Source: Auanema rhodensis
Taxonomy: Eukaryota; Animalia; Nematoda
DNA: 64,000 bases
NCBI GenBank assembly: GCA_964057225.1
Contig: OZ059894.1
Coordinates: 17,794,001-17,858,000, forward strand
Direction of reading: 5' to 3'
In this document: piece by piece, positions 19,615 to 44,000 of the stretch
How positions within the stretch are numbered: the first letter of the stretch is position 1
How the letters are laid out: every line of letters begins with the position of its first letter
Notes under the pieces: generated by a model
What the model was told of the DNA's origin: nothing
Database searches by the model: none
Seen by the model: the letters and a program-made list of their open reading frames with translations, nothing else
Made by a program: the position numbers and the translations under genes

Positions 19615-22383
19615 ATGCCCATTTCACCAGAAGATCTGGAGAGAATCAAACAATTGCGTGAATTGGTCAAGGACCAGGTAGGATTCAAAGATTATATTCC
19701 AATCGATATTCCATTCTAAATTATCTTGAATCTAGATTTTTGAATATAAAAATAATGAAATTTCAACCTTTTTTATTTTAAAATTAAAGATTTTCATTTA
19801 AGATTACCCCATATTATGATACGGATTTCAACCTTCTCAGATGGTTAAAGGTTATTAAAGCTAAAATATTTAAATATTTGAATTTTTTATTTTTCAGGGT
19901 CATGATAATGATTTGAAAGTCATTGTTCCAAAACTTGTAAGCCATTTGAAATTAAGAAGTTCTGACTGGCAATTGGATAAAGTTGCTGATGCTCCTCGTG
20001 ATCACCAAGTTCATGATCACTGGAAAGTAGGTTTAAAACTTTTTTTATCATGTATTATATTAATTATATTATATTTACATAAATATTTACTATATTATAG
20101 TCAGGACTAACTGGACCAGCTGTTTTAACTAAAAATGTTATTGTAAATATTGAACAATCAGGAAATAATGATTATTGGGGATTACTTAAAACATATCCAA
20201 TCAATGATGTTTTAAGGTAATTATAATTTAAAAATTAAAATTAATTTATATGATTTTTAAAAAATATTTGATTTAGAGCACGTGTGTATGATTTGGAAAG
20301 TATGCTTAGAGCTGTAATGAAAATGGAAGAAGAAACAGGTAGATCTATATAGAATTATGCTAATTATGCTAATTATATAAGAAAAAATTTACAAAAATAT
20401 AAATTTAAGGAGAACAATGTTCAATTTTATATATAATGGATTTATCTGGAATAGTTATGGATCGTCATACAATTACCTTGATGACTGGTGGCTTATCTGC
20501 TATTAGTGCTTTCATGTCTGAGCATTATGTTGAATTGGTTCATTCATTTGTTTTAGTGAATGTTCCAACCTTCATATCAGCAATTTGGTAAGTTTTTTCA
20601 TCAAATTCAATTTCTATAATCAGAATAATACGCATAAATAAAAAAAGTTTGGCAGAAAAGTTGTTGCAAAAAATCAAAATTCTTAAATATTGATGATTTT
20701 TTGAATATAATATACATAGTATTAAAATAAAAATCCTTTTTCTTTTTCATATTCATTATAACTACTTATTCATTTATATATTTTAAATTATTATTCTTAC
20801 ATTCTATAAGTATATTATATATAATTAAAGTTTTAATATATAAATTATATAATTTTTGATTATTAAAAAATTCAAACTATTAGAAAATAAATGATACATA
20901 ATTAGCATAATTTAACACGTCGTACGTCGTACAAGTTCTCATTTATTTTTTAAGAATTCTAAATAAACGGTTGTTTTTGAATTTCTTATAAAATAATTTT
21001 CTAAATAAATTTGTTTGAAGTATTTATTTACTATATTTTAGGTCAATTGCTAAGCCTTTACTTCCGGAAAGAACTCGTCTGAAGGTTAACATCCTAGGTG
21101 GTAGCTGGCGTGAAGATATTCAGAAGATTGCAGTTCCCTCTACTTTACCTTCATATTGGAATTTAGAAGGAGAAAAAGGGGTATATTATACATTACTGAT
21201 ACAGATAATTTATTTGTCTTATTACTATTTTTCAGCCATTTACTGCCAATGTTGAAATTGGATTACCATTTCCGGAATCGGAATATTACAAGAATGGTGT
21301 TGCACAAGGATCTCAAGTGCTTTCGGTACCAGCAGGAAAAACTGGATACTTTGATATTGCAGTGAAAAAGGTATAATTGTAATTTGAAAAAAGTTTAAAA
21401 TATCAGGGAATGGAGAGATTTTGGATATGACTGAATTGATCTTTAATCAGTTAATCAGCTATCTATGTATTCGTTTGTTCACGTTTTCTACTGAATATAA
21501 GCGTTTCTCATATGATATATTATATTAAATGTTCATTGTGATTCAATGAATTTGAAAAAAAAAGAAGGAGGACGGACATCAGAATATGAAAACGATCTTG
21601 ATATTCATAACAACGTATGAAATATATAAAACTACATATGTATAAAAGTACCAAAAGTTTATCCAGAAGTACTGTTTCGAAAAAAAGCTGAAATTGAATA
21701 ATAAACATTGAATATATTACTTAAAAATCTAAAAATAAAAATGTTCTTTATGAAAACATCAAACTTTTTACATTTTAAATTAATATATTAAACGATAATT
21801 TGATAATTAATATATTTCTTTTATTATAAATTAACATATAAATATAGCTACTTATACATTTAATTTTCAGAATTCAAAGCTTCGTTGGGAAATTCATGCC
21901 AGTGGTCATTTTGCATTCTGCATCTACAAACTTGACGCAGCCATAGGAGATGATTACTCCAAACTTGAACGAGCTTATCCATTGTTTAGTGTGAGATTTT
22001 TAATCATTTTTCAATTTCTCACTAGTTTCTATGTTAAAATTCAATTTTTTATACTAAAAAATATTCTAAATTCTAATAGCGCTCACATAAATCTATATGT
22101 GAAATTCTCGGAAACATATTTGAAAATTCTGATAACCTGAAACAGATTCGCTTGAATTGAAGCCAATTTATTAGAGAATATAGATTATCTATTATATATA
22201 TAAATTTAAATTTAAATAATAGACATGATAGCATTTTGCTTTCAGAAGGTACCAGGACCAACTTTTGTGCCATGTATTGATGAGATTCCATGTATGGAAG
22301 ATGCAAACTATCGGTTTTGGTTTGGAAATGAACATGCATGGTTACATACACTCAAAATTTCTCATTTAATTACAAATACTTAA
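19615..22383 (+). CDS. SEC14-like CRAL-TRIO plus GOLD domain lipid-binding protein (ctg-type)
   Basis: YYDTDFNLLRWLK|GH, ILYIMDLSG, EHYVELVHSFVLVNVPTFISAIW|SIAKPLLPERTRLKVNILG, and a GOLD-like C-terminus VPAGK...YRFWFGNEHAWLHTLKI. Confidence 0.92.
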
Positions 22384-34000: not shown

Positions 34001-35128
34001 TTTTTTTTCAAAAAAAAAAACGAAGAAATATTGAACAGAAGAAGAAGAAAAAAACAAAAAAAACTTTTTACTCTTCTTAGTCATGCACAGCAATCCTCCC
34101 ATTTTTCTGATTTCAGCTGAGCATGCTAAAGTTGGCTTTTTGCTATTTTCATGACAACTATGAAACCATTGAAGACGAAGATTTCGTGCGCAAGAACGGA
34201 ATCTGAAGACATAGTATAGTATTTGAGCTAATGTATGTAGATGTATAGATGTATTTAAAGAAAAAAAAGGAAAAATTGTATTACATCGTAAAGAAAAATA
34301 GTTATTTCACTTTCATCGATCTATCTATCTATCCATTATCTCTTATATGTATTTCTATATTCATATTTCCCTCTTCTTTGTATTTCTTCTTCTCCTTGTC
34401 TTTCATTCTATTTCCTACTATCTCTTTCACCTTCTCGCCCAGTTTCTAATTCAATTTTTCTGCTTGGATCCTCTAAATTGTCCCCAGAGAACATAACCAT
34501 CTAATTTCATTTGCTCACTTTACCACCAAATGAACCTACTTTTCATTCTTTCCTTTTCTTCTTTCTTTCATATTCTTTACTCTATTACTCTATCTATGTT
34601 CATAAAATGGTTTTCAACTTTAGAAACCAAAATTTGTCCGAGAACGGCTTAAAGAACAACTGAACAGTCATTGTTCTCTTAAGTATTTTACATGATTAAG
34701 GACAAATTACATAAACTCAAGCCTAAAATTTGGAATATTATTGAGGTTCTCCAAAACTAAAAGCATTTCTTCCAGTTTTCAACTTAACTTTGTGTTCTTT
34801 TCCAAATAAAACTTTGAACATCCATTATAGAAATGGAAATAAAAATTAATAAACAATCATAATTTCTCTTTATTCCAATTTCTCTTCTTCTTTGATGTTG
34901 AGAAGATTATATTTTTTTCTTCAGCCAATAAATCAAAAAACAAGATAAGCCACCCATTCCATGCATTTCCAATTCTCATTTTTCTCTTTTAATCGTTTAG
35001 CTCATAGTTTTTCATAAAAATGTTGTCGTTGTTTAGAGAAATATTGAATAATTTCTTTAATTTATTTGTAAATCGAACGTATATATTAAATATTTTAAAG
35101 AATTTGAATTAATTCTTTTAGAAGAATA

Positions 35129-35599
35129 ATGCTGAAGAAAATAATCTATTGTTTTCTGTTCATAACTCATTCTACTTTATCATCTAGAATACTTGACAGT
35201 CCAATAATTATTGAGAGACCATCATCATCTCATATTGAATGGAATGAATTAATACTTGAATATAATCCAGATTCATCGCCAATTCCTAATATTACTGTAA
35301 GTTTTTATTCTTTTTTCATCTTAACTATATGTTATGGTTTATTCCACTTTTTAGATTTCGTTGCAAATCTCAATGACTGCTTTCAAATATAATCCAAATG
35401 ATCATACTATGCATGTTATTATGGAAATCAATCAAAATTGGATTGATCATCGTTTAGTTTTTCATGGAGAAAAGCAAATCCCGGTAAGCTATTATCTCAA
35501 GTTTTTATAATAAAATGAACTTCGTTCCTTGTCTATGCAACACATTCGGTTGGGATTAGATCTTGATCCTAGTATGACGTAACAAGAAATGACATAGCT

Positions 35600-35630
<31 letters not shown>

Positions 35631-36394
35631 GAAGCTAAAATATAATTTTATTGTTTTTAATAACTATAATCTTCATTTCATTCATATATATCATATAATT
35701 TCTCTTAAAATTTTTTATGAAAATGAAATAAAAGTTCAATTGAACTGTTATGAAGAAATATACTTTTTTCACTTTGTTTTTGCACAATTTTTTGATTATT
35801 ATTACGATTTACAAGAGTTATGTGAAAAAATATATATTAAGATATATAATTATAATAATAATAATTATTATTATTATTTAAAATATTCATTTATAGATTC
35901 CTGAAAGTATACGAATTTGGCAACCAGATACAATAATACATAATTCTGTAACTGATATAATTCGCAAGAAATCTCTATTTCTCAGTCCTAATGGTTCTGT
36001 ACAAATGGTGGAACGACGTGATGCTGATGTAATATGTGAAACAAAGGTTCTAACATATTTTGAAAAAAAACTAATTTTAATTTGAAATTTATTTCTTCAG
36101 TGCTTACTAGCCTTCAGAAGCTTTGCTCATCGTGGTGCTGATTCAATTAGCTATCAGTTAGAATCTTTCATTCCATCAACTAATGATACTAAACAATCAA
36201 TTTCTAAGAAGATTAACAGTGAAATTTTAAATCGTTCATATTCCATATTAGTATATGAATTACATAATAAGAAAGAAACACAATATAGTTTTATAAACCC
36301 ATCTATACAAACTATTACAGAAGATTTAATGAAAATGGAAATTAATCTAAATAATAGTAATAATAGTAATAGTAATAATAACACCATATCTTGA
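35129..36394 (+). CDS. Secreted Cys-loop receptor ligand-binding-domain-only protein (Neur_chan_LBD-like, no transmembrane domain)
   Basis: Signal-peptide-like MLKKIIYCFLFITHSTLSS. pLGIC motifs YNPDSSP, INQNWIDHRL, IWQPDTIIHNS, LSPNGSV and C...CLLAFRSF. Four exons, ~246 aa, stop at 36392-36394, then AATAAA. Confidence 0.8.
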
Positions 36395-37014
36395 TTATCA
36401 GCCTTTTTAACCGATATTTATTGCTCAATTTTTGTATTTAATATGTTAAAATAAATAAATAATAATATTGAAATTCTTTAATAAACAAAACAAAAATGAA
36501 TTTTATATATTGACAACCAAAGAGATCAAAGAGAAAATTTATAATTATATAAGAATGACTTAATGAAATTGAGCAGAATTCGAAGAAAAAACAGATTGAT
36601 AAATACAAAATTTTTTTTTAAAAAATTTAAAAATAATTATACGACCCAGTTTTGTGAAGAAGACCAGTCATAAGGCAATAAGATTTGTTTTATTGAAAAA
36701 AACATATTTTTCTACGAAGACACGACTGTGAATAAACCCGCATTTTTTTGTGTTTTTTTTTGTTTCGAATGGCTTTAGAGAGAAAGAGGGAGAGAGAAAG
36801 AAGGAGGAAGGGAGAAAGAAGGAGGGAGAGAGAAAGAGGGAGAGAGAAAGAGGGAGAGACAGAGAAAACAAATTTAGCTGAGATTATTCAACAAATAACT
36901 TGATCCTAGGTTGTTACTATATGAATATGGCAATTATTCGAATCAGAGTTTTCTTGAAATTTGTCTGTTTCTTTGAAATATTCATGTTGCTTAGCCTATG
37001 TTATTCATATATTC

Positions 37015-38130
37015 TTATACTTCTACTGAGAGATAGTCAGCCGAATAGCATATCGAGGGTGTACTAGACGGTGTCGTTGATACTGTTGTTGCTGCGGATG
37101 CAGCTGCAGCTGAAGAAGTGGATGACGATAATGTTGGAGTATTTGGTATCATCGCTGAGTTGAAGGATGATGACGATGTTGAGCTAGAAGAAGAGATTCC
37201 TCCAGTTAATCCGGCTGGAGGGCTGATTGGCATCTTAATAGCTATCTCATAAGGTGGTGGAGGATTGCGGGGAATCCCACAAATCCACATATCTTCCGCG
37301 ATTGATTCACTCAACATATTTTCTGAAAGAATAAATATAAAGAATGATTAATGTATATATATATTCTCTAGAAATTTTTTTTACAGATTGATAAATGAAT
37401 AAGAACATTGTAAAATACATTTGTTCAAACAGAAATTTAATACAATTGTAAGAACATCACAAGAATTTTAATGCCCTTGTACAGACTTTTGACTATTTTT
37501 TCCATAAAAATGTTATAAACGTTTCAAAATGGTATTTGATCTTTTAAATTTAACGATTTAGAGAAACCGTAAAAACATGTTTCAAAAGCAATTCATAACT
37601 TCTATTTAGGTGTCTCTTCAAACTTGTGTAATGCTAAATCTTATATATTCAAAATAAAAATTTTTTCTTCTATTTGATAAAGACTCAAGTAACAAGTTTT
37701 TCATAAATTACAACTATAAATATATATAATTAAGTAAAAGTAAAATTATTTTGCCCTTCCATATATGTTAATCCTATCACTAATTTGTTAAATTTATTTT
37801 GTTTTTTTGGTAAATTTATTTGAAAGTTAAGCTTTTAAAAGGTTAAAACACTTACCAGCGTTATTGCTTTGTTGTTGTTGTGCCCTATCTACATATTGAC
37901 TATAAATTCGGCACCCAAAGGTGAATATGAAAACCATAAAGAAAATGCCAATAGTTAGACCGGCAGCAACACCTCCACTAACTGATGTTGAAGCTGGTTC
38001 TGAAATAGAAAATTATATAAAAGAAAATATAAAAGAAACATCTTAGAAACATACTTTCATGATAATCATTAACATAGTAACGATCCCATGTTACTGGACG
38101 AAATGAATGATATGGCCATAGTGATTGCAT
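37015..38130 (-). CDS. Small single-pass membrane protein with a PPPPY motif and S/T-rich tail
   Basis: Three exons: MQSLWPYHSFRPVTWDRYYVNDYHE|KPASTSVSGGVAAGLTIGIFFMVFIFTFGCRIYSQY...NNA|ENMLSE...CGIPRNPPPPYEIAIKMP...SVEV*. The ATG directly follows TTTCAG, so upstream exons are possible. Confidence 0.8.
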
Positions 38131-38412: not shown

Positions 38413-40947
38413 ACTATATATATATAATATATAAGAAATGAAATCAGAAGATAAGGTTATAATATAGATTTTTGAGAAATATTCCAATAGAAGTAAGTAA
38501 AACCATCATAATATTATATAATTCGTTTACATATTTTAATTATATTAATCTAAACTAGGACAGAATAAGTTCAATTACTTTAGATATAGGATATGAATTT
38601 GGATTGACTGTAAACAATACTAGAATAAAGTTTTTAGGACATTGAAGGAGATAGAAGAATGAATACATACACATCTACTATAGTATATGGTATTACATAT
38701 GTAGAAATGTACATGTACATGTATTCTTTGGTGTAAAAAATATGATATTACAAAGTTTAATTATATATATATATATATAGTTATAAAGTATTAACATTAA
38801 TTTTATATAAAATATTAATTAATAGAATTGAGGAAAATATTAATTATAATTAGTTATATGTCCAGATTTATAGAATAGCAGTACTTTTATAATATTAACG
38901 GAGAGGACATAATGTGCAGAATCAAGCATTTTATTGTGTCGATGTTGAGTGCAAAGTTCGGACTAGGCAAGTTCATCAAGATACCCTATACAGTTGGAAT
39001 ATTGGTTTCAGATGAGATCAAACTATTATGATCTTTGTTTTCAGTCCAGATTATTATTATAAGTTGTATGATATTAGTGTAATTACACGAAAAAGAATTA
39101 GTTAATGAGAGAGGTAATAGTTGTTCCGATGATGATGATGTTGATGATGATGATGGTATAACATGTTGTCGTTTTAGTTTTCATCAAAAATGGCAGTTGA
39201 CACATCTTTTCGCTTTTCAACTAACCAAATACAGGCCCAAGGAAGATGACAACAAAAAGCTGGTGCCGAGGACAAGATGTGGAAGTAGTTGCTTTCAAAA
39301 TGAAAGATGAAATGCTAATGAAATTTTTTTTCAAATTTCACTTTAATGGATAGACTGGGTGGTAATATTGGAGAACGACATGGTGGGTAAGTAGCAACAG
39401 GGCAATGGACCAGGTAGATTAAAATATTAAGAAAAGGGGAAGAAGGAAGAGAAGAAGCAACAATAGCTATCATGAATCATGTTGGGGGTCAGACATTCTC
39501 TTCTCTATTACGGCATGGTCGTCCGATAAGCATCGAAGGCGTCTGCCACACTGTCACATCATGCCCAACGATGACAGTTTGTTCCCCGAGGTCATGTAAA
39601 ACTTTTCATTTCGAGAATAAGACAAGAGGTGAAGAATAAGAATAGCTTATGAATGAGATAGTGTTATGACGTAGTTCGAATGAGAAGAATAAGGTAACGG
39701 TCAAACTGAAATGTGACAATGTGGATGTATTGATGTGCAAGAAAGGGACAAATTCATTTGAAGATTAAGCATTGATTATAAAATTTTGTGAATTCAATGA
39801 ATGCAAAAGAAAGGAAATGAAGAATTAAATGAAATTTTTCTGAGAAAGGCCAAGAAAGGAAGATGCTAAGATGATACATGAAGAAAACTTGAGTTGAGTT
39901 GAAATTAGTAGAGAAGCGATGGATGGAATGAACACATGTTCCATTGAAAGGTCGACTGAGGTCATGAAGGATATCCTTCAATGAGAATATGAGGCAAGAA
40001 AAGAATAAAGAAAACCTTGCTTAAGAGAGAGGAAGAGGGGCGAAATCGCGATTTAAGAATAACGAAGAGAACTGTCGCCTTCACTGACGAAGAAGCGGTG
40101 AACGACCATGATGACGCCTCCTCATCTGGTTAGAGTAGTTATAGGGTCTGTGGTAGACGGAGGGAAAGCACTGCCAGAACAAAGACAAAGCATCAGCGTG
40201 TAGCGACCTTGGGCACACGCACGAAAGCAGAGGTGACTCGAGAAAGGTTACAACCAACAAAATGAATTATTACACAAAATATAATAGACAAAAGAACGAC
40301 AAAATTTGTATTGAATTGTCAACCGATCCTGAACTGCCAAATTCACAGGATAAAGAGACAATACATAGAAATAAACACAAAAAAAAACAAAATGAAGCTT
40401 GAAGTTGCAACGCGAAAGCAAAGTTTTTAGATTTGAATCGAATGTCATGAAATGAAGATCATACAGGCGTAAAAGGAATAATCTATCATTTGCGGATGAA
40501 TGGTGATAAAGCTTTAAAGCTTATATAAAATGTGCAATTTCAAATATTTTTTCTGAATATTAGCCAAGTTAGACAACGAAATTAAATATTCTAAACAATT
40601 ATTTATTTGCCAACTGATTATTCTTTCTTTTTTATAGAATTGTTTTAAGGTTTCTTTACTAAAAAAGAAAGGTGCAATGTTTGAACGATAATGCTGATGT
40701 GATATACGGAGACGCCAATGACGACATGGTCTAAAACGTTAAGAATAGAAAAACAGGAACATCAACGAGGCCCAGGTATGACACTATTGTTGGTGTTTTG
40801 TCAATATATTATGTAATTATAGCCTGAACTATGGGGAATACATATATGTAGATTCAGGAAGAAACATAGACACAATAAAAAAAGAAACCAAAGTTGCTTT
40901 CTTCTAACTAGAAACGATAAGAAGCCGAGAATGACAAGAAAGCGGAA

Positions 40948-41091
<144 letters not shown>

Positions 41092-44000
41092 GAAGAAATA
41101 GGCGTCAAAAAAGCAATAGAAAGCGAGTTTAGATTATCGCACAACCGTTTGATCCTGTCAAGAAATGAAAAAATGACAATGTATTTGAATACGTGTATTT
41201 TCACGTATTACATATGTAAATATATAGAAATAAACAAGAATATACACACATATATACAGAAAGGTCTAAAGAAAAAAGGAAAAGAGGAAAACGAACGATG
41301 TTAAAATAATTTTTTTCTTTGATATTTAGAAAATATTTGATTGAATAAAGTTGTTTAATTAAATATTTCTTTTATATTAGTTAAAAGCAATGTGATTGCC
41401 TTAAGAAACAGTTAGAAAACATTAAAGCATTTCTCACTGGGATGATCCGAATATTTTTCCTACAGATGAAAAGCTCAAATTCGGAGATCATACATCAATT
41501 GTGCAATAAGAGTTTTTGTGAATAAAAGTAGATAAAGACCACATAGCAAATCAATGTAAAAGCAAAAGTGAGATTGAGCAAGGAAATGAAATTCAAATTT
41601 ATTATCAATTTTCAAAGTCTATGCATAGATGAAGAATCATTTTTTAGATTCTACGAATTCTATGAAAATTTTATAGATTTTCATAAGAAATGGTAATGAT
41701 ATACATATACTTAATAGTTCTTTGTGAAGATGTTTAAGGTTTTGATAATAAGAGTATCGACAGAGTAGAAACAAGAAAGCGCATAATGAACAACGACATG
41801 TTTAAGAAAACAAGAACAAACATTAGAAAATGAAACTGAAAATGGCAAATGAATGAAAGAAAGGAGCAAAAATAGAAGAAAAAGAAGAATTAAAAGGTTT
41901 GAATATTGAAGAGCCGCCTGAGCTAGGAATGTTTATTGGAAGCTTATATAGGATGATGATAAAGTATGTAGGGAAATTATGGGAAAACGGGGTACTAATT
42001 CAAATGAGAGGAAGTTCTTGAGACGACATTCCTCTTTTCTCTATCTTCTCAATGTCATATATATGTACCTTTATGAGTTGTTTCTTCCAACCTTTGAAGT
42101 TGTTAGTTAGGAAAGAGATGAAAAACAAGTAAAACATATCAAATTTTCTGCCATAATGTCTTATTTACTGTCTGCTTCGCCGCACAGACTGACGAAGTTC
42201 CCACTCCAGTAGCCTTTACTTCTCTTACAAACTGCCTATAGCATTCTCTTTCGTTGTTACTTCCTATTACTTGCTCTTTCTCTCTAAATACCCTTGTTCT
42301 GTCCTTTTATATATCAAAGTAATTCTTTAATTTTCAATCATTTTAATACGCTATGATCCAGGTAACTGATCTGTTCATCAAAATGAACCATTTTAAAGAT
42401 CACAACTGCAGTATAGCGTAATAAACGATCAAAGTTTTCCTAGGAGGTTACCGGATTATTTTGAAAATAATAACATGTGAGGCAATAGTTCCGATAAACG
42501 TTCATCTGCTCTTAAATGGTACTATCATCATGTTATAACAGGATAGTAATCAAGTATTAAAACGAATTAACTAGATTATAGAAAAAACATAGAAAGATGT
42601 TTGATTTTTGACAAAAATCATCTACATTTAAAAAAAAACCTTAAGAACTCAAAATTTCAAAATGTAGAAAGATAAAATTCAAATTTATATCAAAATAAAT
42701 ATTTTTGAAAAAATGAACATAATCTGAGCACCGAGTGTTCAACAATGATCAGACAATATACAACAATATTTTTTTACAAAAAAAATTGCCCAAAGTACTG
42801 CTTGAACTTTGACAAGAGGAATTGTGCGTTTGAGAGTAATCATACGTTCATAACAATGCTACAGAAATAAACTCAATATTTCCAAATAATACGAAAAAAT
42901 CATAACAAGGGAATAGACTAGAAATCCTTGGCATACAATAAACACATGATGCCTTCGATTTGATGGGAAAAAAATTGAACGGAGACTTATAGAACAAAAG
43001 GAAATTTTAGGCATTTTGCAGTCGAAAGTATGCTAGAGACGAACATGTTCCCATTTGATGTAGCCTGCGAGACAGAAATTAGAAGAGAGAAAAACTGAGA
43101 AACAATAGCATAAACAACAGATAATTGATTTCATTGTGAAACTACCAGGCAGAAGAATTAACAGCAGAATCCGTCGATTTAAATTTAAGTTCCTTTTCTG
43201 AATGCGTCTTAAGCCGATATTTCCATTAAGGAACGAATTTTCTGACCTTCGCGTGCTCTCCTGGAGCCAACTATAATTCGTATTATTCGTGCTGTTGGTT
43301 GTTTTTTTCTCGAATTTGAAACAAAGAAAAATACAACATCTGTTTAGAAAATGTTTGTGGAAGTTTCAGTTGGTACTAAATACAAGGAGAAACAATTCGA
43401 GATACAATTGCTGTGAATTTCGTATCAAATTCATGACTAACACTGTTCTTGATTTGTGTAAACTTACGTAAACAAAATACATAAACAAAATAATATCATT
43501 TTGTATAATTCAATATCAAGAAACTATTTACAAATAAATATTCACAAGTTTTTTTCTAGTAGTTCTAGCAATGTATACTACAATTGGCGCATAAGTTTAT
43601 GTGACAGTTATGTGATAAGTCAGGTGATCTACATGGTATTTCATTTCTTCATGTGTAAGAGGCAATATCGGTTGCATTTCATCTACGTATTCATTATCAT
43701 TCTTACATCATGATCAATGATAAATTTCATAATATTGATTTTCCATAGTACAAATAAAACTTTTGTTCATTTTTCAAGTAGAAAAGGATAGCTGACGGTA
43801 ATTTGGACAAAAATATTGATGAAGTTGAAAAAAGTAGTTGAAACCAGGCAGAAAATTTAATAGTAATTTCTCTCATTTATATAATAATTTTTGCTTTGTA
43901 CGTATGATTCGTTCTCCAGACATGAGATTTCGTCTTGCAGATTTGAAATAAATTATATTCAGAATCTGTGAAATCCGTTCAGAACCTTGATTAAGTAACC

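Follow-up and report, generated by a model that had tools for sequence, protein, structure and literature searches.

The window analysed here, a 64,000-nucleotide stretch of contig OZ059894.1 (positions 17,794,001-17,858,000) of the nematode Auanema rhodensis (GC ~27%; genome size 181 Mb), contains a channel-less receptor-domain gene of four exons and 246 codons. Its gene model comprises the front half of a pLGIC extracellular domain, carries neither pore exons nor a Cys-loop core, and is spliced with its frame intact, as an earlier note made from the letters of this DNA had proposed. We see about an even chance that this is a maintained, single-copy and lineage-restricted gene for a secreted receptor-derived protein, descended from a GABA-A/glycine-type subunit gene whose pore exons disappeared in the distant past. 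The argument for function is indirect and consists of an old, clean truncation combined with an intact 246-codon frame.

Direct reading of the letters gave four phase-0 exons and an uninterrupted open reading frame (Table 1). The hydrophobic N-terminus taken for a signal peptide in the earlier note is present, the three pLGIC extracellular motifs that it named were all found, and the AATAAA that it placed after the frame occurs three times. The encoded protein has one cysteine in the signal peptide and two in the mature part; the first of these is followed by the last three residues of exon 3, and the second opens exon 4. A (TC)15 run lies within intron 2 at 35600-35630.

Table 1 The channel-less receptor-domain gene and its immediate signals, in window coordinates
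Feature	Position	Strand	Description
Channel-less gene	35129..36394	+	four exons
Acceptor-like TTTTAG	35116..35121	+	7 nt upstream of the ATG; candidate trans-splice site
Exon 1	35129..35296	+	start codon; signal-peptide-like MLKK followed by 9 hydrophobic residues; NIT sequon
Intron 1	35297..35354	+	58 nt, GTAAGT...TTTTTAG
Exon 2	35355..35483	+	strands β1-β2; NWIDHRL motif; PF02931 match
Intron 2	35484..35896	+	413 nt, GTAAGC...TTTATAG, phase 0
Exon 3	35897..36046	+	IWQPD..HN and PNGSV; ends C-E-T-K; PF02931 match
Alternative phase-0 donor gat/GTAATAT	36029..36030	+	use would remove V-I-C-E-T-K
Intron 3	36047..36100	+	54 nt, GTTCTA...TTCTTCAG, GC 17%; in frame, one TGA; stands in place of the Cys-loop core
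Exon 4	36101..36394	+	second Cys and β7-like C-L-L-A-F-R-S-F-A-H, then ~85 residues without detectable relatives; stop TGA 36392-36394
(AAT)n-type microsatellite	36350..36381	+	codes for Asn/Ser tail
AATAAA, three copies	36450, 36454, 36480 (span 36450..36485)	+	56, 60 and 86 nt past the stop

Kinship with the receptor family was assessed by searching Pfam exon by exon (24,736 families). Exon 2 matched PF02931 (Neur_chan_LBD) with 13.1 bits (E = 0.063, profile positions 31-67) and exon 3 with 20.5 bits (E = 3.5e-4, profile positions 79-127). The earlier note had pointed to this profile as a check, and the outcome was mixed: the two matches are collinear, but each is weak and lies under the gathering score of 26 bits in the exon-wise search, and exon 1 matched no Pfam family. 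The probability that both exons hit one family by chance is ~1e-9; collinear matches to one family of 24,736 thus make the relationship to PF02931 other than accidental. The front-half motifs of the family are present with their spacing (WxDxRL, WxPD..N and NG-x13-Cys), and exons 2 and 3 together span roughly strands β1 to β6 of the extracellular domain. Judged by eye, a segment of exon 1 corresponds in position to the N-terminal helix of the family. Against the PDB, exon 2 gave weak matches to GABA-A pi and AChR delta and exon 3 gave none; an exon-sized search with exon 3 found no short relatives.

We next consider the branch of the family from which the gene came. The genome holds 183 exon-level matches for PF02931 and 151 for PF02932. 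The best paralogue is L030 (G000:C7:5.92 Mb), a GABA-A-beta/GlyR-type subunit of the GABA-A beta/GlyR/GluCl group whose best PDB matches reach E ~3e-9. Exon 3 is 35% identical to an exon of L030 over 48 aa (E = 8e-7), its cysteine aligns with the first Cys-loop cysteine of L030, and the NG-to-Cys spacing is the same in both. The two genes also share an intron a few codons before WxP(D/N), a further intron within the Cys-loop, and the pattern C-x-L-x-(F/L)-x-S-F from the second cysteine. In contrast to L030, the channel-less gene lacks the FPxD loop core, recognisable β8 to β10 and M1-M4, and its β4-β5 region is 5 residues shorter. Intron 2 is in phase 0 and lies 21 nt upstream of the Trp of WxPD; among ~55 loci sampled in the same genome, an intron 5-9 codons before this Trp occurs only in GABA-like loci and never in nicotinic-like ones. 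Because of this intron position and of L030 as best paralogue, the gene, judged from its sequence, is a descendant of the GABA/glycine-type branch and not of the nicotinic/AChBP branch. Its independence from the molluscan and annelid AChBPs, suggested in the earlier note, follows from the same descent. The vicinal CC of loop C, reported missing there, is indeed found nowhere in the protein; its absence is expected of a GABA-type descendant and is therefore uninformative.

Exon-sized searches with exons 3 and 4 found no close parent copy in the genome, and exon-sized searches of limited reach found no orthologue or transcript-derived protein. A look-up with the exon 1 ORF returned no record. 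The word searches covered proteins between 0.55 and 1.75 times as long as the query, so these blanks are no sign that annotation or expression is lacking. A full-text literature search returned no described nematode pLGIC protein made of the extracellular domain only. Two loci taken at one point for paralogues (L032 and L033) were rejected as unrelated, their matches being due to chance.

In every paralogue examined, the Cys-loop retains the C-x13-C spacing and an FPxD core; the channel-less gene has neither, and reads C-x3-C with the intron 3 donor at 36047 or loses the first cysteine with a donor at 36029. Intron 3 contains no internal AG and therefore leaves no room for a micro-exon, which upholds the view that no exon is missing between the two cysteines. 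Donors were scored against 28 homology-anchored introns of the same genome; mining of unanchored short introns proved too noisy and was dropped. On this scale, aag/GTTCTAA at 36047 scores -1.4 bits and its rival gat/GTAATAT at 36029 scores -1.7 bits, with true donors ranging from -2.1 to 6.8. Since the two donors are equally weak and the second removes the first cysteine, the collapsed loop is model-dependent: C-x3-C would be one of two equally likely products, according to the donor used. The motif described in the earlier note thus holds with the former donor and is lost with the latter.

Donors are loose in this genome: 9 of the 28 anchored introns start with GTT, so GTTCTAA is less aberrant than it had looked. 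GTAAG opens only 7 of the 28, and short introns cluster at 40-54 nt. The loose 5' splice sites come from pLGIC loci of the same genome (L008-L074, for example L011, L014, L022, L047, L057, L066 and L069).

Six pLGIC genes of this genome (L002, L008, L009, L010, L012 and L030) have an intron within the stretch coding for the Cys-loop, at no fewer than four different positions and phases, which suggests repeated gain or sliding of introns within this short segment. The loop intron of L030 follows the first cysteine by 4 residues and 2 nt, and its next exon supplies 1 nt and 8 residues before the second cysteine. In the channel-less gene, the corresponding intron follows the first cysteine by 3 residues and coding resumes at the second. 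The loop core may therefore have been lost because an intron already lay within the loop and both of its splice sites slid, by ~30 nt in total and in frame.

Exon 4 shows little likeness to the family. Its first ~10 residues (C-L-L-A-F-R-S-F-A-H) align weakly with the second cysteine and β7 of L030 (E = 0.065), and BLASTP aligned the remaining ~85 residues with neither of the β8-β10 exons of L030. Searches with exon 4 matched no Pfam family, leaving the second half of PF02931 (β8 to β10, profile positions ~142-216) without a counterpart, and found nothing in the PDB, by word search, in the ESM Atlas or in the same genome; HMMER found no relatives among 1.84 billion representative proteins. The GC content of exon 4 (26%; GC1 0.27) equals that of the flanks and non-coding background, and its last 11 codons are the (AAT)n microsatellite. 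Its codon score falls between the coding and null distributions, the first 60 codons being null-like. Folded alone and without an alignment, it gave three helices with a pLDDT of 62, a low-confidence result and weak evidence. Since exon 4 is unlike the family beyond ~10 residues and its low-confidence fold is helical, a complete binding domain is not established; of the pLGIC domain proposed in the earlier note, the front half is recognisable and the part after β7 is not.

The absence of a pore was borne out. No exon has a hydrophobic stretch of membrane grade, and a search of the window with PF02932 (the four-helix pore domain) gave nothing at E-values up to 10, the closest hit on this contig lying at a distance of 1.5 Mb. 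A tblastx comparison of the whole window with 70 pLGIC loci revealed no further exon of the family, and the downstream plus-strand ORFs, hydrophobic ones included, match no family. We therefore regard it as very improbable that the four exons are the 5' portion of a complete channel gene whose pore exons are distant, too divergent or missing from the assembly. GTAATA donor-like sites in the microsatellite tail would suit such a gene; against it stand, besides the blank searches for a pore, the stop that ends the frame with its three AATAAA, and a putative convergent minus-strand gene that begins 620 bp past the stop. It is also decidedly unlikely that the product is a true AChBP-like protein, in which exon 4 would form β8 to β10 and complete a domain that is secreted as a pentamer and binds a small-molecule transmitter. 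The architecture of a secreted protein in the gene model speaks for this, as do the ~81 residues between the second cysteine and the microsatellite tail (69 in L030), which are enough for β7 to β10, and the aromatic or His residues at what we take, by eye, to be the positions of loops A, B and D. Nevertheless, homology to β8 to β10 was not detectable, exon 4 on its own was folded, with low confidence, into helices, and the residues known to bind GABA/Gly are not recognisably retained.

A stronger alternative, quite possible though short of probable, is that the locus is a relic which makes nothing functional, left behind when a clean and fairly recent deletion removed the 3' half of an orphan GABA-type subunit gene. 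The β7 exon would then read on through former intron or intergenic DNA, in a frame kept open by recency or luck. Such an origin is consistent with the point at which similarity ends, which roughly coincides with the next intron of L030, and with the properties of exon 4, namely its background composition, microsatellite end, null-like first 60 codons and want of relatives; the loss of both hallmark elements and the weak donor of intron 3 fit it as well. Conversely, ~80 codons would stay open by chance with a probability of only ~0.3-1% in DNA with ~7-8% stop codons. In a young relic it would be an odd coincidence for the 246 codons to have taken just one further lesion, the collapse of the loop, and for that lesion to be in frame with its splice signals still working. 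Moreover, intron 3, with its low GC, resembles an old intron rather than decayed loop-coding sequence, and no remnants of pore exons lie nearby. In favour of a maintained gene, the start, all four exons, the splice signals and both cysteines are intact, with the cysteines at homologous places. The frames of exons 1 to 3 are each open in 1-3% of shuffles and the 97-codon frame of exon 4 in 1 of 10,000; because intact-looking windows are the ones that get flagged, this argument is weaker than the p-values. Codon usage of exons 2 and 3 is coding-like (top 1.5-4.5% of null ORFs), and that of exon 1 is null-like. The pore is absent together with its coupling loop, which we count as a coherent joint loss, and with neither a close parent copy nor pore remnants the truncation must be old or very clean. 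Counting against maintenance are the blank outcome of the limited, exon-sized searches for orthologues, paralogues and transcript-derived proteins, an exon 4 without relatives, of background composition and with a helical low-confidence fold, and a weak intron 3 donor with an equal rival.

If the gene is maintained, its protein would have kept the signal-peptide-like start, with β1 to β6 encoded in exons 2 and 3 and a weak likeness to β7 where exon 4 begins. Past β7, the frame would run on through ~85 unrecognisable polar residues and the microsatellite to the stop, probably held open by selection. The predicted product is secreted or ER-luminal, N-glycosylated, ~25 kDa in size and unable to conduct ions. 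The 'complementary' face (loops D and E) belongs to the part that can still be recognised, and loops F and C do not, which favours a docking modulator or decoy over a transmitter sponge. Our best guess is that it would dock either onto full-length GABA-type subunits, at their extracellular domains, or onto its own copies, and that it might serve as a modulator acting in assembly or at the surface, or as a decoy, rather than as a sponge of the AChBP type.

The nearest known counterparts are the AChBPs of molluscs and annelids. Like them, the predicted protein is a homologue of the pLGIC extracellular domain that, in the gene model, carries a signal peptide and lacks a transmembrane domain, and its size is similar (~220 mature residues versus ~210). 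AChBPs belong to the nicotinic branch and keep a Cys-loop of 12-13 residues, the vicinal cysteine pair of loop C and a recognisable full β-sandwich, whereas the channel-less gene is of GABA/Gly type and has C-x3-C at best, no CC and an unrecognisable second half. Truncated subunits can act as dominant negatives, as in human CHRFAM7A/dup-alpha7, which keeps the transmembrane domain and has lost part of the extracellular domain. The product described here would likewise be an incomplete subunit that might join or block the assembly of full-length ones; its truncation is the reverse, the pore being gone and part of the extracellular domain kept. The prokaryotic pLGICs GLIC and ELIC illustrate that the disulfide is dispensable in the superfamily, and they retain a full-length β6-β7 loop with its Pro, as well as the pore. 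Unlike them, the channel-less gene has lost the β6-β7 loop itself.

If the protein is expressed and folded, soluble receptor-domain proteins would have arisen a second time and independently, here within the anion-channel branch. The gene would further amount to a natural experiment in which the β6-β7 'Cys-loop' proves deletable when no pore is left for it to couple to, and its product to a possible small soluble scaffold for structures of nematode GABA/GluCl-type sites, which are anthelmintic targets. A bolder and rather unlikely version is that it is a natural secreted binding protein, pore-less and Cys-loop-less, that evolved independently within the GABA/glycine-type branch in a nematode and that pentamerises or caps native receptors and tunes inhibitory transmission; it would then be the first of its sort outside the nicotinic branch. 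Should the locus be a relic, it would simply be one of the usual leftovers of turnover in the large nematode channel family.

The surroundings of the gene offered some further observations. The hydrophobic plus-strand ORF at 36882-37064 was considered as a decayed M1 helix and rejected, as it matches no family. The convergent neighbour, at 37018-38012 on the minus strand, is a putative gene for a small single-pass membrane protein, with a TM exon at 37830-38012 and a Ser/Thr/Ala-rich tail exon at 37018-37347 that contains a PPPPY motif. It matched no Pfam family and had no homologues in the size range searched, so it offers no synteny route to orthologues. Between this neighbour and the channel-less gene, at 36777-36867, there is a GA-rich array of ~90 bp whose units measure 14-32 nt. 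The segment 38000-42000, in which no gene was recognised, is strongly strand-asymmetric (GC skew +0.28 to +0.30, AT skew +0.14 to +0.26), and long tracts of (CT)n/(GA)n occur in it around 40900-41200. Upstream on the plus strand, at 20409-22380, there are exons that by eye resemble those of a CRAL-TRIO/GOLD (SEC14-like) protein.
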